From the NCBI GenBank assembly GCA_973895155.1, contig OZ316899.1, positions 4,777,241-4,841,240 of the forward strand: a stretch of 64,000 bases of DNA. The letters run 5' to 3'. Positions 13,681-47,353 of this stretch are shown here, in pieces. Each line of letters starts with the position of its first letter. Within the stretch, counting starts at the first letter, position 1. The notes beneath the pieces are model-generated. The model searched no databases and was not told the DNA's origin. It saw only the letters and a program-made list of their open reading frames with translations. The DNA comes from Marsupella aquatica (lineage: Eukaryota; Plantae; Marchantiophyta). A program made the translations under genes and the position numbers.

Positions 13681-15172
13681 AACAGTTTTGACAAATGACT
13701 GAAAATTGAAAGGATTATTTTGTGATGTCCAAAACCTCTACCAATGATGTCACAATCAACACACATTTTCAATCATGATATGCATGCCACCGGAATTACA
13801 GCGACAAACAAATTCTTTTTTACAAATTGTACCCAAACCACTACAGAACAGGTGGTTTGAGGGTTTTGGGCACTGGAGTGATTTGTGTGGAGTTCATGAT
13901 GGTGCATCTCTTGGGTGCCTCAAATCTCTCCACCTTGGCAATTTATGCGTCACAACCTCATTGTCGTTGCTATAACTAGTTGGCACACGTGATGGGGGTG
14001 TTCCATGGCTTCACCATGGGGGGGCTAACACGGAGGAGTTGTGGTGGTGGCGGGCCCAACCCTCCTCCTTTAATCGTGGCCCTCCGAGAATTGCCGCAAG
14101 GTGGATCCACTTCTCATTATCCATTGTAAGTCTGTCACTCCGAAAACCACTCGAAACAATATGCTTCAAAGCCCTCATTTCTAGCGACTAACATAGTCAC
14201 TCAAGTTGGGTTGGTACATCACGCATCCTTCTAAACAACTTCTCATGAAGTGGTAGTCCTAGGGTGATTGGGGGGCAAACCACTACAAATGAGGTGGTTT
14301 TAGGGTTTAGGGCAAATGCAACTTAAGATACCACCTTTATTTGAGTTGAGAAGTAAATTGGGTGCGAACACTTGCAATGAAGTGTATTTATATGTACACG
14401 CCCAATTGACTCAAAAAAGGTCCTTTCAGGCCCTTGCCTTTTGGCGACTTCAAATTGCACCCATATTTGAGTGATGCAGCACACTTTAGTGTGATCCCAA
14501 ACCATGAACTAGTGCTAAAAGGAGTGAATTGTGTGGATGCATCACATATGCCCCATATTTGTAATTCCGTAGAGTCTTGGAGTGATTTGTGTGGAGTTCA
14601 TGATGTTGCATCTCTTGGGTGCCTCAAATCTCTCCACCTTGGCAATTTATGCGTCACAACCTCATTGTCGTTGCTATAACTAGTTGGCACATGTGATGGG
14701 GGTGTTCCATGGCTTCACCATGGGGGGGCTAACACGGAGGAGTTGTGGTGGTGGCGGGCCCAACCCTCCTCCTTTAATCGTGGCCCTCCAAGAATTGCCG
14801 CAAGGTGGATCCACTTCTCATTATCCATTGTAAGTCTGTCACTCCGGAAACCACTCGAAACAATGTGCTTCAAAGCCCTCATTTCTAGCGACTAACATTG
14901 TCACTCAAGCTGGGGTGGTACATCACGCATCCTTCTAAACAACTTCTCATGAAGTGGTAGTCCTAGGGTGATTGGGGGGCAAACCACTACAAATGAGGTG
15001 GTTTTAGGGTTTAGGGCAAATGCAACTTAAGATACCACCTTTCTTTGAGTTGAGAAATAAATTGGGTGCAAACACTTGCAATGAAGTGTATTTATATGTA
15101 CAAGCCCAATTGACTCAAAAAAGGTCCTTTCAGGCCCTCGTCTTTTGACAACTACAAATTTCACCCATATTT

Positions 15173-17805
15173 CCTTGAAAGGGGAGCTTTTATAAAATAA
15201 GCCACAAAAACCCCACGACGGGGGGAAGCAAGCAGAGAATGTACATTCACAGGCCAAAATACAATATAAGAATCCAGATAGGGACAGTTGTCAAAATCTA
15301 TTGTCCCCTAGAACAACCTCATCTATCCTATATATGGTGCCAGCAAGGGCAACATGCCCCATGAATCAGTTATGAACTGATGAGCAATCTCCCTTGTGGT
15401 ATCACAAGCATAATCTCCTAAACTTTATTCTAAACCGGGTCCCTAGATCTCTGTAAGTGAACAATCCTAAAGTCACTTCTATAATTTAATCTCAACCGTT
15501 CAACATTCATCCAGTCCCTTGCTCTTTGCAGTCTTCCATACTTCCTACCTTGAGAGAAATGCCTGCTGACAACAAACAAGTTTGACACCGTTTCTGAAAG
15601 CACAAGTTTAAAATCAAAGGTGCGCTTGTTCAGTTTGTTGAAAACTTGTTCGTTCCGTGCTAGCCATAAAGCCCACAGTAGCTGAAATGTGAGAAACAAT
15701 CTAGTAGTGTGGGTATGTGCTCGTCCAACAGAGGCCTCAAGTAAATCCAAAAGACCGTGTCCAGAACTGAACTAGAAACCCTGACCCACTTCGAGCCCAA
15801 AACTCCAACATGTGGATGCAAATGGACAATGAAAAAATAGATGGGGGATCGTCTCCAAATGCTCCAAGCAAAAAGAGCAAATCCCCGGGTCCACCCCGAT
15901 GGTAAGAGCTCGAGAGCCCGTGAAGAGACCTCCCACAATTATCAGATCAGATTGCCATAGATTTGCCCAGCATTTCAGCCACTGTGTCTCCGTGTACTCA
16001 GATCCCCAAATCCTATTCCATCTCTAATAGTCAGCCCCTTTTGGCCTCTGCATCTGGTAAATGCAATGATTGGGTATTTTAAAATACATTGAAGATCGCT
16101 GATCATCAGCCCAACGCCACATTCTCGCACCTGGTTTGTATCCCCATTTGCAGTTAGTTTGGTCCTGTATCTTTTGAAGAAAGAGCCTGCTACGGTCCCG
16201 GTAAGCCAGGTCAAAACCACGTAATCTGTGCCACCGTTCTCTTAAAGATCTCCAGGAGTGGGTTGCCTCATCCCACAGGTCCACAATAACCTTAATTCCT
16301 AGCTTCCCAAGTATCTCTGTAGTAATTTCCACATGGTCCTATGGCCAGGACTGGAAACCCACTATACAGCGGAGAGTATCCCCGATACTCCAACGACCGG
16401 GAAACCCAGCAGCACCAGGGACAAAACACAGATGCGCCCAGAAAGAGACCCAGGCCTCCCATAGGCCACCAGAGTAGGGCATCCCTCCGCCGTTTCGCAA
16501 AGAACACAACAGTAACTTATCTTTGACTGTGTGACAATTTCTTCTAATCGTCCGGAAATTTTGCCAGCCCACAAGATTTAGATTCACCAAAAATAGGCAG
16601 GCCCATTCGGAGTTGAGGAGTCAAGCACTTTTGTGATTAACTGGATTAATAGCGCCTCTGAATGGCATCTGAAGTCACAAAATCCAAGTCCCCCCTCCAC
16701 CTTGGGTCTCACCATCTTGGCCCACGCAACCAGGGGGAGCTTCTTGTTCTGCTCAGTGCCCACTAGGTTTATACCCCATAAGAAATCCCTACACAGAGCA
16801 ATCATCTTCCGCTCACAGAGGGGCAAGTCAAGGGGCGGGGCGCAATGGACGTGCGGTAGGGCCAGGGATTGATGGTCCAGGTGTGGCATGGGATGGTCGT
16901 GGCAGAGCCCCCAAGGCGCGAGCAAGGGCCATGGGACGGAGGCAGACGAGGGGTGACGGGGGGCAAGTGGCATGCCTGCCACCAGCCAAGGGCGGTCCAA
17001 GTGCGGGGCAAGCCAAGGGGCAGGGCACAATGGGCGTGCGGCAGGGCTAGGGGTCGTCGGGGCTGGTCAAGAGCTGGGATTAGTGTGGCCTCGCCTGGAC
17101 CAAGGGCAAAGGGCAGAGCGGAGGGGAGAGTCACGGAGGGTCGGAAGGCAGTATATAGGGATTGCAAGCAACACATGTTTGATGAGCAGAGTTCTGCCGG
17201 TAAATGAAAGCATCTTGCTCGACCATGAAGCCAGACGAGAGGCAATTTTATCTAAACAAAAGCTACGGATATGCTCCACCTGCAGCCCAATACCAAAAGG
17301 GGCACCAAGGTATTTCAGTACTTCTCCTTCTCTGCTTATCTTACATCATGTTTCCACAAGCCAGGCTGGAACTGCCTTCAGAGCCAATGGGACGATATTC
17401 AATTTGTGCAGATTCAACTTGGCCCCCGAGGCATTCTCGTAGCAGCTGAGAGCCACAGTGGTGTCTGCAAAACTCCCAGGATCCGCCGGGATAAACATGC
17501 CAACATCGTCCGCAAAGAGCCTATAACATATTGTCATCCACTCAGAAATTTTGATACCATTGAGTCTATGTCCAGCCAGCTCGGCATCCAGGAAATCCAT
17601 GAGAGGCTGAGTTGAGATCACAAAAAGAAGTGGAGAGAGAGGACATCCTTGTCAAACTCCCCACCTAAGTTCGATAGCCCGGCTTAGCCTCCCATTGACG
17701 TAAACTTGGGAGGAAGCATTAGACAGCAAAGCCTACACCAGCTTGGTGAACCATGCACTAAACCCCAAGAGTCTCATAGTTTCCCATAGATACTTCTAGT
17801 CAACG
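15173..17805 (-). mobile_element. 5'-truncated L1-clade LINE (RT C-terminal half + zf-RVT), degenerate
   Basis: QGCPLSPLLF, LFADD, ASGAKLN, KYLG.P, GRTLLIKHVL, FLWG...VAW...PKVEGGLG, CSFC...ETIPHLFFHC, WALWLARNEQVF. TATTT is duplicated at the junctions (15168-15172 / 17806-17810) and the 704-bp unit rejoins across it. Confidence 0.92.
16823..17130. other. GC-rich ~310-bp insertion inside LINE ORF2
   Basis: Interrupts IPIYCL...ERKMIAL; flanked by TCACAGAGGG / TCACGGAGGG; contains an internal ~48-bp repeat about 185 bp apart. Confidence 0.55.
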
Positions 17806-20800
17806 TATTTGAGTGATGCAACACACTTTAGTGTGATCCCAAACCATGAACTAGTGCTAAAAGTAGTGAATTGTGTGGATGCATCACATAAGCCCCATAT
17901 TTGTAATTATGTAGAGTCTTGGAGTGATTTGTGTAGAGTTCATGATGCTGCATCACTTGGGTGCCTCAAATCTCTCCACCTTGGCAATTTATGCGTCACA
18001 ATCTCATTGTCGTTGCTATAACTAGTTGGCACACGTGATGGGGGTGCCCCATGGGTTCACCATGGGGAGGCTAGCACGGAGGAATTGGTATGGCGGCAGG
18101 CCCAAGCCTCCTCCTTTAATTGTGGCCCTCCAAGAATTGCGGCAAGGTGGATCCACTTCTCATTATCCATTGTAAGTTTGTCACTCCCCAAATCACTAAA
18201 AACTATGTTCTTCAAAGCCCTCATTTCTAGCAACTAACACTATCACTCAGGATGGGGTGGTACATCATGCATCCCTCTAAACAACTTGTCATGAAGTGGT
18301 AGTCCAAGGGTGATTGTTCCAAACCACTACAAATGAGGTGGTTTTAGGGTTTAGGGAAAATGCAACTTAAGATACCACCTTTATTTGAGTTGAAAAGTAA
18401 ATTGGGTGCAAACACTTGCAATGAAGTGTATTTATATGTACATGCCCAATTAACTCGGAAAAAGGTCCTTTGAGGCCCTCGCCTTTTGGCGACTACAAAT
18501 TGCACCCGTATTTGAGTGATGCAACACACTTTAGTTTGATCCCAAACCATGAACTAGTGCTAAAAGGAGTGAATTGTGTGTCACATCACATAAGCTCCAT
18601 ATTTGTAATTCGTAGAGTCTTGGAGTGATTAATTTGTGTGGAGTTCATGATGTTCCATCACTTGTGTGCCTCAAATCTCTCCACCTTGGCATTTTGTGCG
18701 TCACAACCTCATTGTCGTTGCTATAACTAGTTGGCACACTAATGGGGGTGTCCCACGGCTTCACCATGGGGGGGCTAACACGGAGAGATTATTATGGCTG
18801 CCGACCCAATACGCCACCTTTTCTTGTGGCCCTCTGAGAATTGTCGCAAGGTAGATCCCCTTCAAATTCTCTTTGTAAGTTTGTGACTCCCCAAACCACT
18901 CAAAACAATGTGCTTCAAAGGCCTCATTTCTAGGAACTAACACTATCACTCAAACTTGGGTGGTACATCACGCATTCCTCCAAACAACTTCTCTTGAAGT
19001 GGTAGTCCTAGGGTGATTGTTGTTCCCAAACCACTACAAATGAGGTGGTTTTAGGGTTTAGGGCAAATGCAACTTAAGATACCACGGTTATTTGAGTGAG
19101 AAGTAAATTGGGTGTGAACACTTGCAATGAAGTGCATTTCTGTGTACTCGCCCAAACCACTTGACATAAGGTCATTTCAGGCCCTAGTCTTTTGGTGACT
19201 ACAAACGGCACTTGTATTTGAGTCATGCAACACACTTTGGTGCAACCACTTGCCATGAACTAGTGCTAGAAGGAGTGAATTGTGTGGACACATCACATAA
19301 GCCCCAGCTTTGTAATTCCGTAGAGTCTTGGAGTGATTTGTGTGGAGTTCATGATGTTCCATCACTTGTGTGTCTCAAATCTCTCAATGTTGGCATTTTA
19401 TGCATCACAACCTCATTGTCGTTGCTATAACTAGTTGGCACACGTGATGGGGGTGTCCCATCGCTTCACCATGGGGGGGTTAACACGGAGGAATTGTGGT
19501 GGCGGCGGGCCCAACCCTCCTCCTTTAATTGTGGCCCTCCAAGAATTGCCGCAAGGTGGATCCACTTCTCATTATCCATTGTAAGTCTGTCACTCCGGAA
19601 ACCACTCGAAACAATGTGCTTCAAAGCCCTCATTTCTAGCGACTAACATTGTCACTCAGACTGGGGTGGTACATCATGCATCCTTCTAAACAACTTCTCA
19701 TGAAGTGGTGGTCGCTACTACCATCACCTAGTCAGTAGTGATAGATGACATAAATGTTGTAATTTACAAATAACTGACAATCAAGTAAGGGATGGAGAGC
19801 TTGTAAATACCACTACAAGTGATGTAGTACGTATCGGACTCTCACCAAAGTGCAGCAACTATGTCACCAACATTTGAGTGATACATTGCTTAAACCACTT
19901 GCCACCAGGTAGTGGGTTCACAGGGGATTGGCAAAAGCACTTGGAATGTGGTGATTTTCCGAAGTGCGAGCCATTAAATTGCCAAAGAAGTTTAGTGAAT
20001 GGTGCCAAGGGTAATTAAAACATAGAGAAAATTAAAGCAACATCCTGACCGGAACACAGTTTAGGGTACATAGAAGCTTGGGGTTTCTGGACACTCAGCG
20101 TATCTCTGAAGGGAGTGTCATAGAAAATGTATTATTTTGTAGCACCACTAGCATTACTTCTCAAGCTTTGTATGATTTACACACTTTCAAGGAGTAAGGT
20201 ATTAAAATTGGCAATAGACAAAAAGTGATTCACATAGGGTAGTCTAGAAATGAAAAATTAATGTGGGTTTAGGATAAATGGTTGGCATTAGGACCCGCAT
20301 TAGGACTCACATGGATCATGTCATTTCTCACTTAAAAAAGTGTTGCAAGAAATTAAATGTTTACTACCCAAGTAATTATACCACCTAGGTAACATTGTTG
20401 GTGGCATATGGGAAGTTCTTCATTTTTTGCTTTACTTTGAAAGAGTCAGGTAGTCACCACTTAGCACTTATTTGTAGAGGTTAGACAAGGGGCAACGTTG
20501 GGGTGAAACTACATTACAAAAAAACTTGGGGGTGAGTAGGTTGGCTTCATAACATAAGGGATGGATGGGATGGCCTGGGGGCTTGGGGTGTAAATTTAGA
20601 CACCGTTAAGTAGAGGGAACGGAGGCCTTGGGTTAACATCAAATTCCCCCACGTTGATGGCTGAGATTGCTCGGGGCAATCTCCCTTCATCCGATGGCTG
20701 AGATCACCCTAGGCGCTTCCATGTCAGAGTAAGTCTAGAGTACGGGTTTGCGCCAAACGGCTATTTGCACCCGCCTTACGTTGGATGAAGAGTTGCGTTC

Positions 20801-23802: not shown

Positions 23803-24255
23803 ATGGTGAGGACTCGCGGTGCTCATTCTCAGAGTCTTGCAAGCACCACAAAGAGATTGCGTCTGGAATCTGTCAAACGTGGCACATGGCCAGCCCACTC
23901 TGCATGGTATTTTCGTTATCCAGTTGTAGTCCAGAATGACTACAGCCGGCCTCCACCTGTGGCATTACCCTTTCTCACATCCGTGGTGTATGTGTCACTT
24001 ATTGGCAAAGTGCCACAAGTCAAGGCCATCCTAGCACATGGATGTATCCATTCTTGCCAGTATGACTGCGTTGCTTGTAGGGTGGTCAACCCAACAACCC
24101 TAGTCAATGCTGACAAAGTCGCTAAACAAAGTAGGAGGATATGCATCCTTTGGAACCACTTTGCATTGTTGAATGGTGTGGATAGTGATCTCGGGTGTCC
24201 TTCCCTGCCAAACCCCGCTATTGGGGGTTTCTCGGACACATCATGTTTGATTTGA
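23803..24255 (+). CDS. CACTA cargo gene 1: 150-aa Cys/His-rich 'MVRTR' protein, unknown function
   Basis: Intact ATG ORF, homologous along its full length to 50146-50595 (SAWYF.Y.V, RP.P...PF.TS.V.VSL, GC.HSCQYDC.ACR, CI.WNH, CP.LP.P..G.F). Confidence 0.75.
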   Translation: MVRTRGAHSQSLASTTKRLRLESVKRGTWPAHSAWYFRYPVVVQNDYSRPPPVALPFLTSVVYVSLIGKVPQVKAILAHGCIHSCQYDCVACRVVNPTTLVNADKVAKQSRRICILWNHFALLNGVDSDLGCPSLPNPAIGGFSDTSCLI

Positions 24256-25305
24256 AGTTAGTTTACACCTGCAGGAATTCCAACAAAGTATGCACGTACC
24301 AAGATGCAATGAGATAAGGCATATTTTTGGATGAAATAGTAACTTAACACTGAGAAATAACTTATGCTTTGACTTTTTCTATATTCGTACAATTTTGGAT
24401 TGAGGGTTTGAACACCTCAGTGGAATTAAAGTTTTGAAGTATATTGCGAAACCCCTATCTACTAAGCACAACATTTTAAATAATCTAAGATGTCACCAGT
24501 CCACTCAACATCTCTATTCAATGACTTTGTTCCAAAAGTCCCACAATCTATTGTTAAATGAAAGTTGAATCCAATAGTTAAAGTCTCTGTCAATGACTCC
24601 CACTCCCCCTGGCAGATATGCCTTATGGCTCTAGATCGGGTACAGTGAATGAAGAAAGTTGAAGAGTGTCCATGTGATGTTTTTCCATGCATAGTCCTTG
24701 CCAACTCAAACCAGTGCTCTGTGTAGTGGCTCCATTTAAATGATACAGGATTCATTGACCATGGCTTAGCTGCTCACTAATCCTTTGGTAGCAATTTGAC
24801 CCTGGCTCTGTAATCTGCTGGTCATTTAAATGGTATACCAATTGTTTGGTAGTTGTCTGAGTGTAGCTATGTAATTTGCTCTAAAACAAAACTAGAGAGC
24901 GATTATTATTTTGAGTTCAATGGCGAGCCTATAGTCCTTTGCATAATTGGAATAGTATTGAATGAGTCTGAGGCAACCTTTAGTTACAGAAGGAGTTTGA
25001 AATGAAACATCAGATGCATGTATGTAGTCCAATGACTATTTTGTGTCACATTTGTGCTGTTGCAGATTATGAATCCTTGTTTTTACATCTTGTGACGTGA
25101 GAGGGGATTGAGATCTACATCTGAAACCAATCAAGACAATCTCCAAATTTCATTGCCTTCCTCTTGGTTGAGTACAGTTGGCGAGTCCTCTGCATTCTGG
25201 CCCCACATTGGATTGCAATATGCAAGTGGTAGTATGTGTTTTATGACAGCCAATTTAACAGTTTAATAACTCTTCAAGTTTTCTTGTTCACGTCTAGTGG
25301 TCATA

Positions 25306-25961
25306 ATGGCTAGGACCAAGCATAAATCCAGAAAGAATGATACTTGAATGAGAAAGGAGGAAGATGTGTTGATGATTGAATTGTGGTCAGACATTGAGAA
25401 GACAGTGTCGGTGTAGTCCCCAACTTTGTGGCATTTGTGACTGGCATGGAGATCTGGCCATGTGTGATGGGGCTTGCCATCGGCACTTCCACCATGTTTC
25501 CAAAGTTGGTGAGGCCGTTGGTAGGTGCCCTACCGTATTTATTGCACCAGGCAAGGATGATGATCCTTGGTATTGTCCAGAGTGTAAGGATAAGACATAC
25601 GTGTTTTCAGTGTGGCATTGTCTCTACTACAGCCAGGCAGTGCCCCCAGCCAGATTGTGTTTGTTTTTATTGTCATGGATGCTTGCCACTTGATGTGGAG
25701 TCTTGCCCCACCCATACATGTGTTGCATGCCAGCAGGACCATGGTGACCCTCATCTGGCAGAGGCAGTGCAATGTTTGAGATGTCCCAAAACTTGGCATT
25801 GTACTTGCCTAGCCGAGAGTCAACGTCAAGGATTTGCACCGGACAGAGTGCCCTGGCATCATACTGCACATGACCAGGGACGTTGGATGATTTACTGTCC
25901 TGACCATCCTATTGACCCTGCTCTAGGCACAGCGGCTCATGATCACATCTCTTGGCTTTGA
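25306..25961 (+). pseudogene. CACTA cargo gene 2: EDM2-like composite PHD protein with H3-tail-like N-terminus (1 stop, 2 frameshifts)
   Basis: ATG at 25306 gives MARTKHKSRKNDT*; then CGICDWHGDLAMCDGACHRHFH...WYCPEC, CFQCG...CPQPDCVCFYC, CPTHTCVAC...CLRCPKTWHCTCL...WMIYCPDHPIDPALGTAAHDHISW. Confidence 0.85.
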
Positions 25962-27083: not shown

Positions 27084-28234
27084 TCTGATATCACTCTAGT
27101 GGAGTGGGTTTCTATGACTATAGGTGATTGTATTCTGATATGGTCATGGATGTACGTGCAGAGTAGCCTAGAGGTGTGGAGTCTAGTGCTAGTACCATTA
27201 AAGTGGAGGATTTTGCAGTATCCAGAGAGCTTGCAGAGCTTGCAAGGTACGTGGGTCCTCTGCATTCTGGCAAATTGAGTGGAAGACATTGTTTGGGTTG
27301 TCTTGAAGTGGCTGAAACAATGTTGAGGAACTTTTGTGGTAGTCAAGATGACTTGAATAGGAGGGATGACAAGTTATCACTAGTAGAAACCGGGGGTATT
27401 TAGACCCCATTAAACGACTATTCAGTACCATATAGGACTTGGAAACGATTGGGAAGGACTCCAGTCCTTTATAGGACTGTGAGTCGTATGTTTTGTTACT
27501 ATAATCAACTGAGTCCTTTATAGAACTGGTTTATAAGTCGTTTAATAGACTGGATTTTCAGTCTATTTTAGTCTTTGTGTGGGTAGCTTTGGTGAGTCAT
27601 TTTTAGTCTTTTATGGGCTGCGATGGTGAGTCGTTGGGAACGACTAAAAGGTTATGGAGGGTAGTCTTTAAATATACTTTGTGTGTTTATAAAACGACTA
27701 AAGTAGACACTTTGTGGGGTATGTATAAGTCTTTCATGTCAACTGGATATGAGTGATGAAGACCCCACTATACTACTTGGAATGAACTCACTCTTGTGCA
27801 CAAATAACACATTCCATTCATGTTTTATTGTGTACTTGGAATGAACTCACTCTATAAGCTCACCATTCATCATGTTCACATTAGAACACATAGAGTTTCA
27901 TAAAGCCATCTTCTATACCATGTACACTAATATGAATTCACAGATTCAAACATCATAAACTACAAAGGTCACAAAGTATTTCTCTATACCATACACACTA
28001 TACTGAAATGATACAAAACAGATTCAAGTATCATAGACAATCACCATAGAGCCATAGTTTGACATCAATCAATTGTTTCATACATACAGAATTCAGAAAT
28101 ATCAATGTCACACACAACGGCTCCTTCATCCTCTTTACCAAATGGAAAAATTGGTACAGATATTTCTTGGATCTTTCCAAGGCAATGTCAAAATGTGACA
28201 CAATGCACATGATTCTATCTCCACTTGCATTCAG

Positions 28235-31200
28235 TCACTGCAGACTAACACACTCTAATGGCCAGAGCACAAGAGATCCTACTGCATCTGCAATTATTTC
28301 CTGAGGTGGATCATCGTCTCTATTCGGAAATGGCAAATTACAATCAGATACAATCATTGTAGTCAACAACACTACTACATGGTCATCCAGGACCACTTTG
28401 CCATGGAATTTAGCATGATCCGGTCGCAAAATGCATGTACCCACACATACTTGTGAGTCATCCTCCCATGATAGAAGATTATGGATTGGCTCTGCTGTGG
28501 CTATCACCTCCACCTTACCCTAGCTGTTTTTCTTGACTTTCCTGGGTGGCTTATACATGACATTATTCATACCTTGGTTGCAAGTCATGACTTTGGCACG
28601 AGTGTTTTGTGCTGGTGATCGAGAATTGGCTACACTCTTCTTCAAAGAATCTGCATCCATATTTGACACTTCCGATTGTGTAGCAGGATTTCCCTGCGAC
28701 ATCATCTCAGTATCTGCCAACATTGTACTTGCTTCAATTGAAGCATCTACAATCTTACTTGCATCCAATGTTGCTCCCAAGTTTTGACATCGCTTCACCC
28801 TGCTCCCACTTGGTTGAGAGTCTGTCAACTCTACATCAACTACTATTCAGTGTCATGTCCAACATAAGTCAATCACTCATCACATGTGCTAAATGTACAT
28901 GTCACCAACCACAAAGTTGTCACTATCTCCTTACCATTATGAACAGCCTTCTTTCCCTTCTTTGCCATTGCCATATCCTCCATGTCTGCTTCTGCTGATC
29001 AATAAACACACCACAATATTCAGGTTCAATCTATTAACCACTGAATTGTTTCTCAACATTCATATAGAGGAATTTAAAGCATCAGCTTACCTGATACCTC
29101 CTTGACTATGGTCACTGAGGCATTGGGCACATCTTTTTCATTATTTCTCTTTGAATCACCTGATACATCAATCATGATGTCACTTCAGATCCCAGTTGAT
29201 CCAACCAGTTCTTACAGAAAAGATTACCTCCAACCGGCTTAAGCTTCACAAACTCCATGCACTTTTCAAATGATTCATACTGGATCATATTAGTAGGTTA
29301 CTTGTCTCAGCAACCTTTTTGCCATTCTGCTTACTGATTATAGGGTCCTTCTCTGCCTCCACTCTTCCTGCATTCAAACCATTCACTTACTGATTACAGG
29401 GTCCTTCTCTGCCTCCACTCTTCCTGCATTAAAACCATTCACTCAATTCATGAAAACTTACTTCTAACATTTGAACATAGGACACAATGAACAATGGGCC
29501 GGTGTCATTTCCATACCTGTGTCAGATTTGCCAATTCCCTTTTTTGTTAACAAGGGCACACTTTGTACAATGTTGCCCTCATTGTTTGGTTGGGAACCAC
29601 CCAATTTTTCAATCACAAGCTTGAAATTAGATTCCACTGATGCAAGAAGGTTTCCTACAGATGCCTCCACAATATCCAAACGATCAGCCAATTTACTTTC
29701 CACTCAAGGGAGTCCACAGTCTAATGACTTCAACCGTTCACACATCTCTGTGAGAGTTGTAACAGTTCCCTGTCATAACACAGCTTACATATCTCAGATA
29801 ACTGTCCCCAAGAACTGGTTGCTTACTTCCTACTACATTTCTTTTTGATGCTCAAGGCCAAATAGTCACAGACCATACAAAATTACAACATAATCACCTG
29901 TTTGGAAGTCACACTTGTCACCTCACTCCTTTGTTTCATGAACTCCTCTCTCACTTCTTGTGCTGATGGTCCTTCACCTGTCAATTTCTTCTGCAGTCCA
30001 CATCAACATACATATGAATGAAACCAAGTGTTGATTGTCAATGAAAATGTAATAATGGTAGCAAGATGATAAGTTTGAGGCTTACTATCAGGCATGTCAC
30101 TGCCTTACCAATTGTTCTTTCACTGGAGCATAACTTCCTCTCCCAGCCTGTGACAGGTGTTTCACTTTGCCTCGAGCATTTGACATCAGTTCACTCTTGC
30201 TCTGTCCAGCCTCCGACATGAACCCTTTGATTAACCGTGTCCATTGATCCAGTTCCAATGATGGGGGTGGTGGCATTCTCCTGTTAGAACCATTGTCTAT
30301 CCACATCCTTTTCAACCTATGCCTCTCTTGTTTCAAAATCCTCATTGCATAATCTGATATGAAATCTTCAACTGGGCCCTTACCATCATTACCAACATAG
30401 TCCCACCATTCAAGAATGTCCTTGCAGATAGCAGCCGAATCAGCTTTGTTCTGACTCCTAAACTTTGTAATGCTCAAATCTAACCAACGCAATACTTCTC
30501 CTCTTAGGTCAAAATGCCAACGGTTCTTACCATCACATGTGGGAGTTATCCAACCATCGGAATTCACTTCTACTTTACCAAATTTGTTACTGTCTCCTGC
30601 CTTGGTACTCCCTGAAGCGCTACTAGGTGTCCCTCCACGGCCTGGTGTCCCCCCACGGCCTGGGGTCCCTCCACGGCCTGATCTCCCCCCACGGCCTGGA
30701 TTGCATTGTCCAAACCTCCTTGGAGTCCCTGCACATTTACGGGATCCATTAGGTAAGTATGAAGCATAAATTTTGCTGCCAAATATACACTGGACTTCAG
30801 AGCAATTTTGCAATGACCAAGTTACCTCTCCCTTGGCGCATAGATGGTTTTGGACCACCTGTCCAATTGCTTTGTCTTGATGAATTAGGGCCATTTCTCT
30901 CGCCTGTGAATGATTGCCTCCTATCTGAACGTGGATGGCCTTTGTTGTTTTTGTGATTGTCCCAATCAAAGTCTGCATACCAACATGTACATGCCACACT
31001 GATGGACCGTAAGATTAACTCTTTGCCCTAGCTAGAGTTCAGATAAGTCCATATTGAGCTAAATCTCTACTACCATCACAAAATCACTAGCACAAGGCAC
31101 TTACTTGTCCAATCATCCTCCTCACCTTTCCATTGCCCTCTATACCCGTCTCTACCATGCTTTGGGTGTTCATATTCATCCCATCCATCTTCTGCTCCAT

Positions 31201-31447
31201 CATAGTCATCATCATAATCATTAGGCGTCCCTTGCCAATAACTCTGGCTCCTTCTAGGTTATGGATTATGTGATTTCTCTCTAGCTGCCCGCCTGCCTGG
31301 CACTTGATGAGGGCCCTGTGCATCCTGCATAGTTGCATTTTTCTGTGAGCCCCCTGCATCTGGATCTCCATCCATATCCAATCTTTCCTCTTCACCCCAC
31401 TCTCCAAGCCCCATGTCTGTCTCCATGTCATCCCCCTCTTCCCCCAT
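28235..31447 (-). pseudogene. TnpA-like multi-exon gene of B1
   Basis: Exonic ORFs 31259-31447, 30097-30999, 29464-29703, 28520-28828 and 28235-28513, homologous to the B2 exons, with extra stops. Confidence 0.75.
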
Positions 31448-31624
31448 AGCTTATGCACAACACCCACAACCAAACAAGGAGAATCAGCACACTAAATTCA
31501 AAGTATCAATCAATTTCATGCATATCCAACTATCCTAAACATCATTCCAGGGAGCAATTCCCATTCTGTGACTCTGTGCAGGTAGTCATCCTCAACCTCA
31601 TACTTGCCAATCGCCAGTTGTTGC

Positions 31625-34600
31625 CTATTGCACATCATCAACCTCATCATATTCCATCTCCCCAGGTTCATCATATGTCTCTCTCAATGTTAACGGGATG
31701 TAGTCGGTCCCTGCCCGAGTTGGAACTACAGTCTCCTGACTAGGATGCTCGAATGCAGCATGGTTGTCCAAACTGAACTCTACTTTACTTCCATCCATCC
31801 GCCTGTTCCATGCTTGGCTATGGCATACCACCCTCCAGTCATGTGACCCCTCCATATCTAGAAAGAAAGCCTGTTCAACTTGGCTAGGGAAAACAAAAGG
31901 CTCAGACCATTCTGGTACTCTGGACCTAAAATTGGCCAACAAGAACCCATCAGGATCACGCTTCATGGTGGCCCTTGGCCTTTGCCATTCTGATTTCACC
32001 CATGCTCCCTTCATCAATATTATAGGGACACTTGTGTTACCATAATTCAAGACCCAAATGTTTGGCAACTCCCCCACATAACCCATCTTCATCCACCCCC
32101 CCTGTTCTTCAGAGTTTCTCTGCTCAAACACAGATATCAATCCACAATCATATGATACACAATGGTCACCCTGCTCATCCCTCACTCGATAATGATTTCC
32201 ATAAGCTCTCATCCGTTTGTAGGTCAGAATAGACAATCGTGGTGGCACAGATAGAAGATACAAATCCTTCTCCATATTTGGGTGATGTCTACTATGCTCT
32301 CGAAATTGCCACCCAAATCCACTGCTTGAACTGTGGGAAGGGATCCTGCTGCCCAAAGTGTGCAACTTTTTGCATATCATATTCCCTGCAATATGAGGTA
32401 CAGGCATAGTTAGGTCTAAACAACACATGACAACCTAAGATCACCCTTGGAATAGACAAGAAGCATCACAACAAAGGCAAGTCAATTCAATCACTCACCT
32501 CCACCATGGTTGCATAGGCTATGTGTTCGCCAGCACATATGAATGAGCCTTGTCTCAAATCGCAACAGACAGCTGAACAGCACGTCCCACACCTTCAACA
32601 ACCTCGCCACTCACTCCATCATCTTCACCAGATTTCCAAACTCTTGTCATAGCTTCACCAGACCCAGCCATGTATTCTGTTAGGAACCCAATGTCTCATC
32701 CTTAATGTACCCCAATGCCATGGAAGCCTCTGGCCTGTAGTATGTTCTCACATGACCTTTCAACAACTTCATGTATCGCTCCATAGGGTACATCCATCTC
32801 GTACTGACTGGCCCATACTACCCTAGCTCTTCTACCACATGGATTAGGAGATGAGTCATAACATCAAAGAAAGCAGGGGGGAAGTATATCTCCAAGTCAC
32901 AGAGGACATAAGCAGCATCCTGTTTCAACTGCTCCAATCCTTGGGGATCCCACACTTTCACACATATACGGCAAAATACATTGCACAGTCAAAGAATGAC
33001 ATTACGGACTGGTTTTTGCATGAGACCTCTAAGGCATAGGGGCAAAATGTGCTGCATCAACACATGGTAGTCATGTGTTTTCATACTGCCAAGTTTATTC
33101 TTTGTAATATGCTTCTTGAAGGCACCAACATAGCCAGAGGGTACTTTCAGACAACTCAATCTATACAAGAATGTCTTCCATTCTTCCTGTGTGCACACAT
33201 AGGGAGCTTGGAACTTGAGAAGTACATTGGGATTGCTTGCATGGGGCTTCAAACAAAGGTGAGGGCGAATCCCCTTCTGTTGCATATCAGCTCGAACTGC
33301 TCCTGTATCTTTCTCACCCGACAAGAACTTCAGCAAGCTCTCACAAATATTTTTCTCAATGTGCATGACGTCCACATTGTGTTTGCTGGGCTTGAATTCC
33401 TGCACTCCACAAAGCAAAGAATTCAACAACAGAAACACTAATTAACCAAATAGGAGGATTGTAACCAACATCAATCCACCATTGCTCCAATCTAAAATTG
33501 CAATCATATAGGGGCTGGAGGCTAAGTACATTACCCTCCAGTACTCCAACTCCAAGTCCATCAAGGTCTGTCTTTTCACACCGTGTTTCACCACTGGATC
33601 CTCAGGTTCTTGATCAGTGATACTTCTCTTGTCCCAATCAGCCTTCCTAGCTGCCCACCTCAGGACTTGCTCTCTGGTGACCCTCTGTGGTGGGCCACAA
33701 AGCTCTGTTTTGTTGTTGAAGTGTGCAATTTGCGACCGTGTGTGCCTGTAAGGATGATCAGCAGGCAGATACCTTCTATGCCCCTGAAATTTCATACTGT
33801 GCAGGGCATGCAACCACTCACTTGTCACATTTTTCCCACATGGTGTGCACCCCACATAGCCCTTTGTCACTCGTCCAGATATGATGCCATGGCCTGGGTA
33901 ATCTGCTATATCCAGCAATCAAATTGCATGCAGTCTAAAGGGGCTGGGTTGAAGAAGCCCCTTCAGAACATCATGGGTTAACACCCCTTCTATCCACAAA
34001 GTCTTCCACTCTTCCACTGCTGGAGCCAACATGATATCTATGAATTGATCGGTTACAGAAGCTGGTCCAGGGATTAGCAGCACCATCATGACAAAAAACC
34101 TCTTTGTAGTCATCCATGGGGGAAGGTTGTAATTTAGCAGCGTAACCGGCCAACATGAATAACGGTTGTTTTTGTCTCCAAATGGGTTTACTCCATCCAG
34201 TGATAGACCAAATCGAAAGTTCCGCTTCTCTGCAGCAAACTGTGGCCACCTCTCATCAACAAATTTCCAATGGTTGGAATCTCCAATGTGACGCTGCAGG
34301 CCATCACTGCTCTTGTTATCAGGAGTCCATGTCATCAGCTTGGAAATGGCAGGGCATCTAAACAGACGTTATAGTCTAGGAATGAGAGGAAAATGACGAA
34401 GAACCTTGGCAGGGTGTGTACATTTCCCTACATTCTTGTACCTGTGCTTACCACAATGAGGGCATGTCAATTTATGTACATGCTCTTTGCGAAACAGAAC
34501 ACACCCATCAGGGCATGCGTCAATAGACACATAGTTCAGCCCAAGGTTAGACATCAATTTCCTAGCCTCGTACATATTTTTTGGAATTGAATTACCATTT

Positions 34601-35323
34601 GGTAACACATTTCGGCACAGGAAGGTCAACAACTCTATCACAACTATATTGGGAACATTGTGATTGCCACAGATGTTCAACAACAACACCACACAACCCA
34701 ACTTGGAGCAATTTGACCCCTCGTAGATAGGAATGCAAGCTTCTTTGATGTGTTTTGGGCCCCCAAACACCCACTCCCTCTCTGCTGCACCTTCCCTAAT
34801 GTCAAAGTCAGGTTCAGGTGGGCCGTGTCCAATGTGTGGCTGCAATTCATTGTCCTCTTCTGATTCCATTGTCGTAAAAAGCATCAAGGTCTTCAAAAAT
34901 CTCTTGAACCATTCTTGGGACATCCATCCCACCTTCCTCAGTGACTGTCTCTGCATCTCCATCTTGGTCATCCACGTTCTGATGTTGTACCCCAGGACCA
35001 TCCTTTGCACCGTCTATGTCCTGCTCTACGTAGTCTCTACGCCTAGCTATATTAGACTCCACAAAGTCAGCTTTCCACTCTTCATCAGAGGAGTCTTCTT
35101 CTACTGGTACATTCCAAACCCTCCACCGAGGGTGCCTTTCATGCCGCAGCAGGTGAAGGTGCACAGTGTTCAAACTCAACGACTTGAATCCTTGGCATTG
35201 TGTGAATGGGCATCTCATCCTCCTACTCTTACCTTGGGCGGCCCGGGCTTGTTCACGCATCCACAATTTAGAATCATGATGCCTAATCCTAAATGGGTTC
35301 TGAAGAGGCAACCTTGGAGCCAT
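31625..35323 (-). pseudogene. CACTA TnpD-like transposase of B1 (degenerate)
   Basis: RCPFTQC...HLLRH; IDACPDGCVLF; LSLDGVNPF...SCWPV..LNYNLPPW; DYPGHG; HNVDVMHIEKN; LGSMKTHDYHVLMQ; EPFVFPSQVEQAFF. Multiple stops and frameshifts. Confidence 0.92.
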
Positions 35324-35655
35324 CACTATAGACACGCACTCAGCGCCCTGTCATTTTATTATGCAAGTGAAAAATACACTCCCTGTTAAGGATTTCACCC
35401 CCGACTGTACTTGCCAAAAGATGTAGCATAACATTCCAAAAAAACAAAAAAAACAAAAAATATAGGTGCCTGAGTCATGTACCTATTCTCAAGTGAATGA
35501 GACAAAATTCCTAAATGTTTGAGGGTGTCAACTCCTCCGCTGTCCTCACATGTACTGCCTCTGCACATACATCCATGACCATATCAGAGTCCAATCATGT
35601 ATAGTCATAGACACAGGTGCCAGGTGCGAGACCGGTGTGAGATGTCCTCATCTTA

Positions 35656-36189
35656 CTACCACATAAAATACGGATACCAATCCTGTTGTTGATGCCACTC
35701 AGCCCTGAGGTACTTAGGCATGTACATTAAGTCATCAAGGTCTAAACCCTGCTCATGCCATGGTGGTCTTTGATCCGTGCCTACAAGCAGTGGCAACAGT
35801 GCCCTCCACGGTGCACACGTTGCTACCAAGTCCCTCCACTGGGTACTAATTAGTCTATATTTTCAGATATCTTGTGCGACAGACATCACAAGAACCCTCG
35901 GCCAGACATGTGTAAGAACTATATCATCTGCCAAATCAGGCAACAAGGAACCACCTACAGCATCGTGCTTGTCTAACTCATCTGCTGAAAAGTAAATGTC
36001 CTCTTCGGACTGTGCATCCTCATTCACCACAGCATTCACAACACATCCAAGGTCTGCAGGCATTATCTCGGATGGAGCTACACTCTGTCTGGTTACCAAT
36101 CCACACATGTAAGCCCAAGTAGTAGCCATGCACGATGCAACCCGTAGGAGGACCCTACATAGGGCCTGTCGGTTTGGAAGAGGCAGCAT
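35656..36189 (-). pseudogene. F-box-like cargo gene of B1 (premature stop at 35863)
   Basis: Near-identical to 46644-47177; DIC changed to DI*. Confidence 0.8.
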
Positions 36190-36365
36190 ACCCACCAAAG
36201 TCTTCTGCCAAACAGAGCCCAGCAAGTAGATTCACAATCACACCCCACGCAACAGGAAACAACAATCACTTCAACTGCGACCAACCATGACAAGATGAGT
36301 TAGTTCAAGGATCACATTTATTACAAAATTGTGATTTATACAAAAATATGAGGGACTCCTACTCC

Positions 36366-37196
36366 TCACTCTCTCCCACCATTGCTAATCATACATCTCC
36401 GCTGAAGCTTGGAGGGCCAGGCCTCAAAAATACCAAAGTTCCAAGCATTCTGTTGCTTCCCTGTCGCTGTTGATTCCAGAAGCCAATCAGGGGAAAGCAC
36501 CCAAAGATTGTTGTTCATGACAAAATCACGCACTGTTGTCTTAAAGAATTTTCTGCATATTTTCATGTATGACAGACCTACAACATGAGTGGAGGTTTCT
36601 GTTAGACTCTCCTCCACTGTCCCACCTAGCTCAACAACTATGGACTTGTAGAGTCTGCACTTAGTCTCCCCAATTCCCTCTTCTGCAAATACCACACTAA
36701 ACCCCTTCATAATGGTATTTCTCTCCTTGCCATGCTCATTCAATATAGCATCTGCAGTCATAGGATGGTGTCCTATGTTGACAACAGGTCCATATTGGAC
36801 AGAAGCAAAGTTGGGTTTCTCTGCCGCTGCTTCATAGGCTTCCTAAAAGGCCTCCTCACTCTCCCACAATTCATATTGCTCAGTACTCTGTACACACCTA
36901 TGTTTAACAGAATCGGTCAACCAAGAGACTTCAACTACTTTTAGACCTTGGTTGGTAATGGCAGAATCAATGAAGGACCATGACCACTTGTTCATCACAT
37001 CCAGCCATGTCCCCGCAACAACATGTGTAGTCTGTGGAGTGATGTCCTTGACTTCAGTCCCATGGAACTCTGAGAATTGTTTTTGTACGATTGGCCAACT
37101 CACTTGGGTGAACCCATAGTGGCCAGGAATCAAAATGGCTTTGATTCCAGCCAATAGAGGCGGGTGGTCAACCTTTGTACATTTCCTAGAGGCCAT
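36366..37196 (-). pseudogene. Tandem-BRCT cargo gene of B1 (linker deletion creates an in-frame stop at 36843)
   Basis: ORFs 36843-37211 and 36366-36761 are in the same frame and match 47354-48202. Confidence 0.8.
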
Positions 37197-37625
37197 GTAC
37201 ACAGACCCCACCTAATCACTGCAGACCGGAAGATAATGCGTTCACCTGATAATCGGAGGGCCCCTAAAATGCTGCGTTTATAACTTGGTCCAGTCGAGTC
37301 GTCTGGTGAGTCTCTGCTCCGATTCCAAACGGGAGAAATATTGGGACAAATGTACTAGACACCTGCAAGGATGCACCTCATAGTTTGAATATGTGCCTTC
37401 ACAATATTGAAGGTGACAAGTGCAATTGTTTTGTGATGCCACATACAGATGTTGTAAATGGGCAGACATTCAATGAGAATACAAAATGTTGGTACACTTT
37501 AAGGGAATTCTCGCAATTTAAATAGCCTTGTAACTTATATGCTCATAATCAGAAGTCCTGATTTAATTTAAGCATTGTCATGTAAGTCGTGATCAAAATG
37601 ATTGCAGAGTTAAAAAAGTTCCTAG

Positions 37626-37784: not shown

Positions 37785-39225
37785 CTCCCCCTTGGTTGAT
37801 TTCAGTATAGCTAAAAATCAACCACACCAAGGGAAAGTTTAACCCGTATTGGTACCCATTTATTTGTGGTTTGGTCTCATCAAAACCCTTCTTCTTACTA
37901 TAAGGGAAAGAGTGCCACAACCATTACATGATATGGGGCCAAATATTTCTAAATGTCAGATATGTTATTCTAATGCAAACTGCACTAGTCTAGACTGAGT
38001 AATTTAAAGTTATTCAAAGTTGAATTTGAAGTCTATAAACGAACAGTTTTGTACTGCTAAGTATCATTTAATGTGGGCTTACACTTCGTGTGTATGTGTG
38101 TAAGGTAATTTTTTTTTGGGGGGGGGGGTTTGTAAAGTGTTGAGTCTGGCCGAAGGTCGCAGTGTGTTTCTCCCAACAGAGTGCTTCTTGGGTGGCAGGA
38201 TCGATCGGGTGGGGCTCCGTTTCATCTTTGCTGCATTGCCGTCTTGCATCGTTCGCTGCACTACACCGCTGCTTTGCATCGGGCCTCAACATCCTCGTCT
38301 TTCGCTATGGTTCTTCTTTCCTCTCGCTTTTCACATAAGTCGGCTGCCACAGCTCTGCTTACACTAGTAGAAACCGGGGGGTATTTAGACCCCATAAAAC
38401 AACTATTCAGTACCGTATAGGACTTGGAAACGACTGGGAAGGACTCCAGTCCTTTATAGGACTATGAGTCGTATGTTTTGTTACTATAATCAACTGAGTC
38501 CTTTATAGAACTGGTTTATAAGTCATTTTATAGACTGGATTTTCAGTCTATTGTAGTCTTTGTGTGGGTAGGTTTGGTGAGTCTTTTTCAGTCTTTTATG
38601 GACTGCGATGGTGAGTCATTGGGAACGACTCAAAAGGTTATGGAGGGTAGTCTTTAAGTATACTTTGTGGGTTTATAAAACGACTAAAGTAGACACTTTG
38701 TGGGGTATGTACAAGTCTTTCATGTCAACTGGAAATGAGTGATGAAGACCCCACTATACTACTTGGAATGAACTCACTCTTGTGCACAAATAACACATTC
38801 CATTCATGTTTTATTGTGTACTTGGAATGAACTCACTCTATAAGCTCACCATTCACCATGTTAACATTAGAACCTCACAAATTTTCAGAAAGCCATCTTC
38901 TATACCATGTACACTAATATGAATTCACAGATTCAAACATCATAGACTACAAAGAAGGTCACAAAGCATTCGTCTATACCATACACACTAATACTTAAAT
39001 GATACAAAACAGATTCAAGTATCATAGACAATCACCATAGAGCCATAGTTTGACATCAATCACTTGTTTCATATATACAGAATTCAGAAATATCAATGTC
39101 ACACACAACGGCTCCTTCATCCTCTTTACCAAATGGAAAAATTGGTACAGATATTTCTTGGATCTTTCCAAGGCACTGTCAAAATGTAACACATGTCACA
39201 TGATTCTATCTACACTTGCATTCAG

Positions 39226-42200
39226 TCACTGCAGACTAACACACTCTGATGGCCAGAGCACAAGAGATCCTACTGCATGTGCAATTATTTCCTGAGGTGG
39301 ATCATCGTCTCTATTCGGAAATGGCAAATTACAATCAGATACAATCACTGTAGTCAACAACACTACTACATGGTCATCCGGGACCACTTTGCCATGGAAT
39401 TTAGCATGATCCGGTCGCAAAATGCCTGTACCCACACATACCTGCGAGTCATCCTCCCATGATAGAAGATTATGGACTGGCTCTGCTGTGGCTATCACCT
39501 CCACCTTACCCTGGCTGCTTTTCTTGGCTTTCCTGGGTGGCTTATACATGACATTATTCATACCTTGGTTGCGAGTCATGACTTTGGCACAAGTGTTTTG
39601 TGCTGGTGATCGAGAATTGGATACACTCTTCTTCAAAGAATATGCATCCATATTTGACACTTCCAATTGTATAGCAAGATCTCCCTGCGATATCATCTCA
39701 GTATCTGCCAACATTGTACTTGCTTCAATTGAAGCATCTACAATCTTACTTGCATCCAATGTTGCTCCCAAGTTTCGACGTCGCTTCACCCTGCTCCCAC
39801 TTGGTTGAGAGTCTGTCAACTCTACATCAACTACTATTCAGTGCATTGTCCAACATAAGTGAATCACTCATCACATGTGCGCCATGTACATGTCACCAAC
39901 CACAAAGTTGTCACTATCTCCTTACCATTATGAACAGCCTTCTTCCCCTTCTTTACCATTGCCATATCCTCCATGTCTGCTTCTGCTGATCAATAAACAC
40001 ACCACAATATTCAGGTTCAATCTATTAACCACTGAATTGTTTCTCAACATTCATATAGAGGAATTTAAAGCATCAGCTTACCTGATACCTCCTTGACTAT
40101 GGTCACTGAGGCATTGGGCACATCTTTTTCATTATTTCTCTTTGAATCACCTGATACATCAATCATGATGTCACTTCAGATCCCAGTTGATCCAACCAGT
40201 TCTTACAGAAAAGATTACCTCCAACCGGCTTAAGCTTCACAAACTCCATGCACTTTTCAAATGATTCATACTGGATCATATTAGTAGGTTACTTGTCTCA
40301 GCAACCTTTTTGCCATTCTGCTTACTGATTATAGGGTCCTTCTCTGCCTCCACTCTTCCTGCATTCAAACCATTCACTTACTGATTACAGGGTCCTTCTC
40401 TGCCTCCACTCTTCCTGCATTAAAACCATTCACTCAATTCATGAAAACTTACTTCTAACATTTGAACATAGGACACAATGAACAATGGGCCGGTGTCATT
40501 TCCATACCTGTGTCAGATTTGCCAATTCCCTTTTTTGTTAACAAGGGCACACTTTGTACAATGTTGCCCTCATTGTTTGGTTGGGAACCACCCAATTTTT
40601 CAATCACAAGCTTGAAATTAGATTCCACTAATGCAAGAAGGTTCGCTACAGATGCCTCCACAATATCCAAACGATCAGCCAATTTACTTTCCACTCGAGG
40701 GAGTCCACACTCTAATGACTTCAACCGTTCACACATCTCTGTGAGAGTTGTAACAGTTCCCTGGCATAACACAGCTTACATATCTCAGATAATTGTCCCC
40801 AAGAACTGGTTGCTTACTTCCTACTACAATTCTTTCTGATGCTCAAGGGCAAATAGTCACAGAACATACAGAATTACAACATAATCACCTGTTTGGAAGT
40901 CACACTTGTCACCTCACTCCTTTGTTTCATGAACTCCTCTCTCACTTCTTGTGTTGATGGTTCTTCACCTGTCAATTTCTTCTGCAGTCCACATCAACAT
41001 ACATATGAATGAAACCAAGTGTTGATTGTCAATGAAAATGTAATAATGGTAGCAAGATGATAAGTTTGAGGCTTACTATCAGGCATGTCACTGCCTTACC
41101 AATTGTTCTTTCACTGGAGCATAACTTCCTCTCCCAGCCTGTGACAGGTGTTTCACTTTGCCTCGAGCATTTGACATCAATTCACTTTTGCTCTGTCCAG
41201 CCTCTGACATGAACCCTTTGATTAACCGTGTCCATTGATCCAATTCCAATGATGGGGGTGGTGGCATTCTCCTGTTAGAACCATTGTCTATCCACATCCT
41301 TTTCAACCTATGCCTCTCTTGTTTCAAAATCCTCATTGCATAATCTGATATGCAATCTTCAACTGGGCCCTTACCATCATTACCAACATAGTCCCACCTT
41401 TCAAGAATGTCCTTGCAGATAGCAGCCGAATCAGCTTTGTTCTGACTCCTAAACTCTGTAATGCTCAAATCTAACCAACGCAATACTTCTCCTCTTAGGT
41501 CAGAATGCCAACGGTTCTTACCATCACATGTGGGAGTTATCCAACCATCGGAATTCACTTCTACTTTACCAAATTTGTTACTGTCTCCTGCCTTGGTACT
41601 CCCTGAAGCGCTACTAGGTGTCCCTCCACGGCCTGGTGTCCCCCCACGGCCTGGGGTCCCTCCACGGCCTGATCTCCCCCCACGGCCTGGATTGCATTGT
41701 CCAAACCTCCCTGGAGTCCCTGCACATTTACAGGATCCATTAGGTAAGTATGAATCATAAATCCTGCTGCCAAATATACAGTGGACTTCAGAGCAATTCT
41801 GCAATGACCAAGTTACCTCTCCCTTGGCGCATAGATGGTTCTGGACCACCTGTCCTATTGCTTTGTCTTGATGAATTAGGGCCGTTTCTCCCGCCTGTGA
41901 ATGATTGCCTCCTATTTGAACGTGGATGGCCTTTGTTGTTTTCGTGATTGTCCCAATCAGAGTCTGCATACCAACAGGTACATGCCACACTCATGGACCT
42001 GTAAGATAAACTCTTTGCCCTAGCTACACATCAGATAAGTGCATATTGAGCTAAATCTCTACTACCATCACAAAATCACTAGCACAAGGCACTTACTTGT
42101 CCAATCATCCTCCTCACCTTTCCATTGCCCTCTGTACCCGTCTCTACCACGCTCTGGGTGTTCATATTCATCCCATCCATCTTCTGCTCCATCATAGTCA

Positions 42201-42439
42201 TCATCATAATTATCAGGCGTCCCTTGCCAATAACTCTGGCCCCTTCTAGGGTATGGATTATGTGATTTCTCTCTAGCTGCCCGCCTGCCTGGCACTTGAT
42301 GAGGGCCCTGTGCATCTTGCACAGGTGCATTTTTCTGTGAGCCCCCTGCATCTGGGTCTCCATCCATATCCAATCTTTCCTCTTCACCCCACTCTCCAAG
42401 CCCCATGTCTGTCTCCATGTCATCACCCTCTTCCCCCAT
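39226..42439 (-). CDS. TnpA-like multi-exon gene of B2 (ptta/Transposase_24-like middle, Tnp1-like C-terminus, GRGGTP repeats)
   Basis: Exonic ORFs 42068-42439, 41088-41990 (RHRLKRMW...PPP...DQWTRLI...KSELMSNARGK...GRGSY), 40455-40772 and 39226-39819 (FHGKVVPDDHVVV...LPFP...AVGSLVLWP). Exact splicing not resolved. Confidence 0.72.
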
Positions 42440-42616
42440 AGCTTCTGCACAGCACCCACAACCAAACAGGGAGAATCAGCACACTAAATTCAAAGTATCA
42501 ATCAATTTCATGCATATCCAACTATCCTAAACATCATTCCAGGCAGCAATTCCCGTTCTGTGACTCTGTGCAGGTAGTCATCCTCAACCTCATACTTGCC
42601 AATCGCCAGCTGTTGC

Positions 42617-45600: not shown

Positions 45601-46317
45601 ATTTTGGCGCAGGAAGGTCAACAACTCTGTCACAAATATATTGGGAACATTGTGATTGCCACAGATGTTCAACAACAACACGACAAAACCCAGCTTGGAG
45701 CAGTTCGACCCCTCGTAGATAGGAATGCAAGCTTCTTTGATGTGTTTTGGGCCCCCAAACACCCACTCCCTCTCTGCTGCACCTTCCCCAATGTCAAAGT
45801 CAGGTTCAGCTTGGCCGTCGCCAATGTGTGGCTGCGGTTCATTGTCCTCTTCTGATTCCACTGTGTCGTAAAAAGCATCAAGGTCTTAAAAAATCTCTTG
45901 AACCATTCTTGGGACATCCATCCCACCGTCCTCAGTGATTGCCTCTGCATCTCCATCTTGGTCATCCACGTTCTCATGTTGGACCCCAGGACCATCCTCT
46001 GCACAGTCTATGTCCTGCTCTACGTAGTCTCTACGCCTAGCTGTATTAGAATCCACAAAGTCAGCTCTCCACTCTTCATCAGAGGAGTCTTCTTCTGCTG
46101 GTACATTCCAAACCCTCCACCGAGGGTGCCTTTCATGCCGCAGCAGGTGAAGGTGCACAGTGTTCAAACTCAACGACTTGAATCCTTGGCACTGTGTGCA
46201 TGGGCATCTCATCCTCCTACTCCTACCTTGGGCGGCCCGGGCTTGTTCACGCATCCACAATTTAGAATCATGATGCCTAATCCTAAATGGGTTGTGAAGA
46301 GGCAACCTTGGAGCCAT
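42617..46317 (-). pseudogene. CACTA TnpD-like transposase of B2 (Transpos_assoc, Transposase_21, DUF4218 and DUF4216-like regions) with in-frame stops
   Basis: MAPRL...RCPCTQC; intron 44526-44392 joins EYWR to EFEPNKHNVDVMHIEKN; FPPAFFDVMTHLLIH...GPV..RWMYPMER. Stops at 45886, 44677, ~44270 and 43981. Confidence 0.93.
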
Positions 46318-47177: not shown

Positions 47178-47353
47178 ACCCACCAAAGTCTTCAGCCAAA
47201 CAGAGCCCAGCAAGTAGATTCACAATCACACCCCACGCAGCAGGAAACAACAATCACTTCAACTGCGACCAACCATGACAAGATGAGTTAGTTCAAGGAT
47301 CATATTTATTACAAAATTGTGATTTATACAAAAATATGAGGGACTCCTACTCC

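Follow-up and report, generated by a model that had tools for sequence, protein, structure and literature searches.

What is the role of the short basic peptide, similar to the N-terminus of histone H3, with which two copies of a stand-alone PHD gene begin in the window (the whole stretch of 64,000 nucleotides analysed here)? One of the copies, B2, belongs to a CACTA transposon, and the other is denoted A. The relevant features are the following.

25306-25961, plus strand: copy A, a stand-alone EDM2/NSD-type PHD gene, now a pseudogene
25306-25335, plus strand: start codon of copy A and the nine codons that follow it, encoding the H3-like basic motif (aligned with the relatives P0157 and P0162)
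25345-25347, plus strand: in-frame TGA at codon 14 of copy A
25399-25408, plus strand: zone of the first frameshift of copy A, from frame 1 to frame 2, as delimited by tblastn pieces
25596-25600, plus strand: zone of the second frameshift of copy A, from frame 2 to frame 3, delimited in the same way
38362-55833, minus strand: CACTA element B2, with matching inverted termini, which holds the PHD-gene cassette
48798-49478, minus strand: copy B2 of the PHD gene, 226 codons, with one nonsense codon as its sole defect
49449-49478, minus strand: start codon of copy B2 and the nine codons that follow it, encoding the H3-like basic motif
49458-49460, minus strand: TGA, private to this copy, at the seventh codon, which is CGA (Arg) in the family

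Re-reading of the DNA reproduces the start codons that the sequence-only reading had located at 25306 (+) and 49478 (-), as well as both of its residue lists. In a comparison by eye with the reference string ARTKQTARK, copy A agrees with H3 at A1, R2, T3, K4, R8 and K9, and copy B2 at A1, R2, K4, A7 and K9. A tblastn search with the nearest intact relatives splits copy A into three pieces, 25306-25398, 25409-25600 and 25596-25958, which lie in frames 1, 2 and 3, respectively; its defects total one nonsense codon and two frameshifts. The arginine that had been supplied in brackets for the nonsense codon of B2 is the right residue: read along the gene strand, the codon is CGA in every contig that was compared over 46600-50700, a set drawn from four public runs and three organisms. 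Given that position 49460 is G, not A, in every one of these contigs, the stop in B2 is a private C-to-T change at a CpG. Neither copy A nor copy B2 can make the PHD protein. The H3 likeness, for its part, goes beyond these two copies and is a property of the whole gene family.

The PHD gene holds only a triple zinc-finger module of the EDM2/NSD type, which follows a leader of approximately 35 residues. The NSD-type PHD models of Pfam match it below their cut-offs only. A profile search against 1.84 billion representatives yields 347 hits that include short stand-alone relatives along with many proteins of 700-1,600 residues in which the module occupies approximately residues 225-435, that is, an EDM2-like architecture; the named members among these relatives are plant proteins. 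The relation to the EDM2-like proteins spans all three zinc fingers, and hardly any variation is seen in the Cys/His columns. For P0001, an intact relative, the AlphaFold model (pLDDT 87.8) has its best solved matches in the PHD5-C5HCH tandems of NSD3, NSD2 and NSD1; the similarity to NSD3 (4gnf) is moderate, with a Z score of 5.5, an rmsd of 2.6 over 83 residues and 28% identity. The NSD3 matches include crystals with H3 1-15 and with an H3K9me3 peptide. The first finger shows a weak likeness to those of AIRE, TRIM66 and ATXR5, which were solved with unmodified H3 (39-44% identity), and to PHD2 of CHD4 (35% identity). Thus, Arabidopsis EDM2 and the PHD5-C5HCH tandems of NSD1-3 are related to the transposon module both by profile search and by fold, but the cellular EDM2/NSD proteins are much longer, have no counterpart of the basic motif and carry an acidic stretch ahead of the fingers. 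Since the cellular EDM2-like proteins are acidic where the transposon family is basic, the leader would seem to have been added when the module turned into a stand-alone gene. A separate clade of short EDM2-like proteins (P0042, P0069 and P0033, 320-386 residues; two of them are named Eleusine coracana proteins) starts with Met-Ala-Arg-x-Lys followed by a long basic, helix-like stretch, and may be a second case of such a start on a stand-alone module of this type.

Whether the peptide is indeed N-terminal depends on what precedes the ATG. The sites immediately upstream in the two copies are these.

25279-25297, plus strand: acceptor-like tract, rich in pyrimidines, whose closing AG precedes the start codon of copy A by 8 nt; L006 and L028, two relatives of the A type, have the same layout
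49481-49496, minus strand: tract of the same kind, likewise rich in pyrimidines, whose closing AG precedes the start codon of copy B2 by 2 nt

The splice-acceptor-like site that had been noticed upstream of each ATG is therefore present in both copies, and it recurs in the family. In nine of the ten loci read, which cover all subfamilies, the distances from AG to ATG are 2, 2, 4, 6, 8, 8, 8, 8 and 8 nt (the exception is L007, with the nearest AG approximately 34 nt upstream), and the ATG is conserved just behind the acceptor-like site across the loci. Because these lengths are not multiples of three and the AG of L001 belongs to a TAG that is in frame, the interval from the AG to the start codon is non-coding. 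En/Spm-type elements have a spliced non-coding leader, and the simplest reading, we infer, is that such a leader lies upstream of the PHD ATG as well. None of the runs listed for the stretch is recorded as RNA, and the contigs of the four runs over 46600-50700 are all colinear with genomic DNA, and hence uninformative as to splicing or the start of the transcript. The opposite arrangement, in which an upstream coding exon would be spliced in frame onto the acceptor and the motif would end up inside the mature protein, would also fit an acceptor-like site before the ATG in nine of the ten loci. However, the distances of 2-8 nt leave no frame that is conserved across the junction, and the start codon that comes right behind the site is a conserved one, so that we regard this as the least probable of all the explanations considered. 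The upstream in-frame coding exon foreseen as a pitfall by the sequence-only reading is thus not supported, and yet the motif is internal in part of the family, as detailed below.

Among 26 diverged family representatives that were examined for the motif, 23 carry the core [AS]-R-[PT]-K-x-K-[AS]-[KR]-K in the leader. Arg-2 and Lys-4 were fixed by the search pattern; the residues in the 23 instances are as follows.

Position 1: Ala in 14, Ser in 6
Position 2: Arg, fixed by the pattern
Position 3: Pro in 12, Thr in 3
Position 4: Lys, fixed by the pattern
Position 6: Lys in 12
Position 7: Ala in 16, Ser in 6, i.e., a small residue in 22 of 23
Position 8: Lys in 9, Arg in 7
Position 9: Lys in 14, Arg in 3

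The kept positions, 1, 2, 4, 7, 8 and 9, are exactly those that the family has in common with H3. In P0003 and P0158 the motif is absent, and P0135 retains only a degenerate internal trace. A scan of metagenomes with a 17-nt pattern across the A-type start found 19 loci, all of them chance matches without a PHD frame.

A resemblance to H3 could arise without any function, the peptide being a relic of the sequence that supplied the start codon: for basic peptides rich in Ala and Ser, composition is in itself enough to give agreement with several positions of the H3 tail, and this H3-like start was picked out among very many screened reading frames. Against such an origin, the residues are kept while the synonymous codons turn over, with five different codons for Arg-2 and all four GCN codons for Ala-7 across ten loci, which shows selection on the peptide and not on the DNA. 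In addition, the leader outside the motif cannot be aligned between subfamilies, and the motif pattern has zero matches in 118,669 residues of the non-family, EDM2-like relatives. Chance resemblance is, accordingly, quite improbable, although less so than an upstream coding exon.

A further candidate function is suggested by the R-P-K followed by lysines that is seen in 12 of the 23 instances. AT-hooks consist of a G-R-P core with basic flanks and bind the minor groove, and an element of this kind could tether the reader to AT-rich transposon DNA. However, every instance has Ala or Ser, and never Gly, at the first position of the core, copy A and two relatives have Thr in place of Pro, and there is no match to the Pfam AT-hook model. 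This possibility ranks between the two preceding ones and, like them, is very unlikely.

The placement of the motif is far more variable than its sequence. It directly follows the Met in 11 of the 26 representatives, and would do so in P0007 and P0170 as well if the second ATG is used. It lies 2 residues inward, after Met-Pro-x, in the intact relatives P0004, P0156, P0159, P0160 and P0171, where the third codon resembles a mutated ATG; 3 residues inward in P0155, the closest relative of copy A; and 7 residues inward in an entire clade (P0005, P0010, P0153, P0154, P0163 and P0164). All these inward-shifted motifs are in open reading frames. The expectation that alignment of the copies would show the lysines in register is borne out for Arg-2, Lys-4, the small residue 7 and the basic residues 8-9, whereas the position of the motif relative to the Met is not constant; in at least four intact lineages it is not N-terminal but 2, 3 or 7 residues inside the protein. 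A further protein search yielded only P0170 and P0171, which were examined in addition to the 26 representatives. Phylogenetic trees, for which an X was placed at every break of a broken copy, unite the transposon family in one clade with a support of 100. Seven placement changes are needed among 28 rows. Direct N-terminal placement occurs in the basal rows and in both clades represented in the window, and is probably ancestral. Since intact lineages carry the motif 2, 3 or 7 residues inward, a free Ala-1, which classical PHD binding requires, appears to be dispensable for the maintenance of an open gene, with the core nevertheless kept. The residue after the second Cys of finger 1 is Asp in 11 of 13 rows with the direct motif and Glu in 13 of 15 rows with a displaced or lost one; this link comprises three independent pairs only and is not significant.

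The survival of the motif on inward moves, together with the seven changes of placement, fits a signal that depends on charge and not on position. The explanation that we place first, if tentatively and at somewhat less than an even chance, is that the peptide is a selected basic leader for nuclear import of a PHD reader carried by a CACTA element. The proposal that the ATG is the real, ancestral start of the PHD gene is made jointly with it and has the same standing. Under the import explanation, a small PHD protein would be made from the ATG, with the selected peptide motif as its first nine residues; the motif would act as a basic targeting signal for import receptors, which may be identical to those that carry histone H3 by its tail; and these receptors would bring the reader into the nucleus. 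The basic composition of the motif, its tolerance of displacement and the basic start of the BRCT frame in the same cassette (see below) all fit a nuclear import signal. The monopartite rule K-[KR]-x-[KR], applied by eye, holds for P0001 and does not strictly hold for A or B2. Several observations weigh against import: it leaves unexplained the conservation of the small residues 1 and 7 as well as the coincidence of the kept positions with those common with H3, and a protein of 25 kDa may enter the nucleus without any signal.

True mimicry of the H3 tail comes second and, in our estimation, is unlikely, albeit well ahead of the chance, AT-hook and upstream-exon alternatives. Here, the peptide would be bound either by the PHD module of the protein itself, within one chain (in cis) or between chains (in trans), or by the writers and readers of H3K4 and H3K9 in the host. 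Removal of the start Met would present A1-R2-x-K4, with a second [AS]-[KR]-K unit at positions 7-9, as a pseudo-ligand gate or a decoy, a detail that shares the low probability of mimicry as a whole. The two explanations are not exclusive, given that the H3 tail is itself a nuclear import signal. A nuclear localization signal had already been named as an alternative in the sequence-only reading, and it is at least as likely as mimicry.

H3 N-terminal mimicry has been defined by the start Met-small-R-x-K, which is found in 48 of 20,996 human proteins, the small residue, one that permits Met removal, being G, A, S, T, C, P or V (PMC8166343). Copies A and B2, with Ala after the Met, Arg-2 and Lys-4, have this start, as do the 11 representatives with direct placement and, via the second ATG, two more; moreover, the match with H3 runs on to positions 7-9, with two small residues conserved. 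Mimicry is also favored by the relatives of the module, namely, by the NSD3 structures that contain this part of H3, by the identity of 35-44% between the first finger and the fingers of AIRE, TRIM66, ATXR5 and CHD4, and by the reported binding of H3K9 methylation by the PHD fingers of EDM2 (PMC5364540). In the AlphaFold model of P0001, residues 2, 6 and 7 form beta bridges, with a pLDDT of 67, whereas the ten residues that follow have 44. For P0157, a relative of the A type, the model has, in contrast, no docked tail, so that one of the two models docks it. Furthermore, about half of the family does not keep the free N-terminus, 12 of the 23 instances have Pro at position 3 and only 3 have Thr, the H3 residue, and both copies in the window are dead. 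More doubtful still, although less so than the minor alternatives, is the full scheme of a transposon-encoded H3 tail mimic fused to an H3-tail reader, in which the tail would fill the PHD groove of its own protein until modified or displaced, or else would soak up host H3K9 and H3K4 enzymes, resulting in switchable reading or in blunting of the element's own silencing marks.

Viruses and a few cellular proteins are known to mimic histones; a literature search identified neither a case of transposon-encoded histone mimicry nor an account of this PHD family. The closest parallel is provided by the H3 N-terminal mimicry proteins, such as VRK1, BCL11B and PCLAF (Chen et al. 2021, PMC8166343), which are chromatin-related proteins with the Met-small-R-x-K start and a basic disordered tail. 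These, however, are cellular proteins of animals, and their tails are ligands for PHD or Tudor domains located in other proteins, whereas here the tail belongs to a transposon gene, resides in the same chain as a module similar to H3-tail readers, extends its likeness to positions 7-9 and does not have a fixed N-terminal placement in the family. The ARKT of G9a and the ARSK of influenza NS1 are likewise short A-R-x-K or A-R-K units that imitate the H3K4 and H3K9 sites, but they are internal or C-terminal and are proven to be methylated or bound (PMC8166343), in contrast to the likeness in sequence described here. VANC of the VANDAL elements is comparable in that a plant DNA transposon encodes it as an accessory protein with a possible effect on chromatin silencing in the host; unlike the PHD gene, it binds DNA motifs of its own element, is unrelated to PHD fingers and has not been described as a histone mimic (PMC5735166). 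If the peptide is a true mimic, it would represent a new route by which a mobile element engages the host machinery of silencing, and the protein would be a small natural instance of a reader that carries its own pseudo-ligand; a 12-residue peptide and a 190-residue domain would suffice for a direct test. If the peptide is an import signal only, the result is an ordinary one, yet it still establishes where a conserved accessory gene of the transposon truly begins and how this gene is organized.

The genomic context of the PHD gene is that of a mobile element. Element B2 is 17.5 kb long, and its inverted termini match over 18 nt. A partial second CACTA copy (27378-37625) adjoins B2 head to tail and is 96.6% identical to the corresponding part over 10.3 kb, stopping before the PHD gene and the gene whose product starts with M-V-R-T-R; identical 18-nt termini are found at 27378 and 38362 and, inverted, at 55816-55833. 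The metagenome contig L003 has the same gene order, namely, a small Cys/His protein, the PHD gene, a BRCT protein and a 190-residue protein. Given this gene order common to the window and L003, the PHD gene is a member of a conserved accessory cassette.

Several other features of the cassette and its surroundings can be recorded. The Cys/His frames of approximately 150 residues that start with M-V-R-T-R are intact in both elements (23803-24255 on the plus strand and 50146-50595 on the minus strand), and the codons that follow their ATG resemble a splice donor. The possibility that this Cys/His protein is a PAF15-like mimic was considered and dropped because its relative in L003 starts differently, i.e., the start is not conserved. 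A tandem-BRCT frame (47354-48202, minus strand; Pfam BRCT, E-value 4.8e-14) has a basic run right after its first ATG, and a pyrimidine tract with an AG is found upstream of it as well (48218-48260, minus strand). In L003, such sites are located at 700-742 and 2940-2982, including one before the first frame of the cassette. This distribution suggests that several accessory frames are reached from one leader by alternative splicing, as in En/Spm. Elsewhere in the window, a tandem array with a repeat unit of approximately 704 bp (13874-19717) consists of two blocks with 80-98% mutual identity. Direct repeats at 9230-11681 and 59501-61721, 50 kb apart and approximately 90% identical, are adjoined by an array of 13- and 20-nt repeats of the subterminal type (11067-11523), and are probably the ends or copies of another element.
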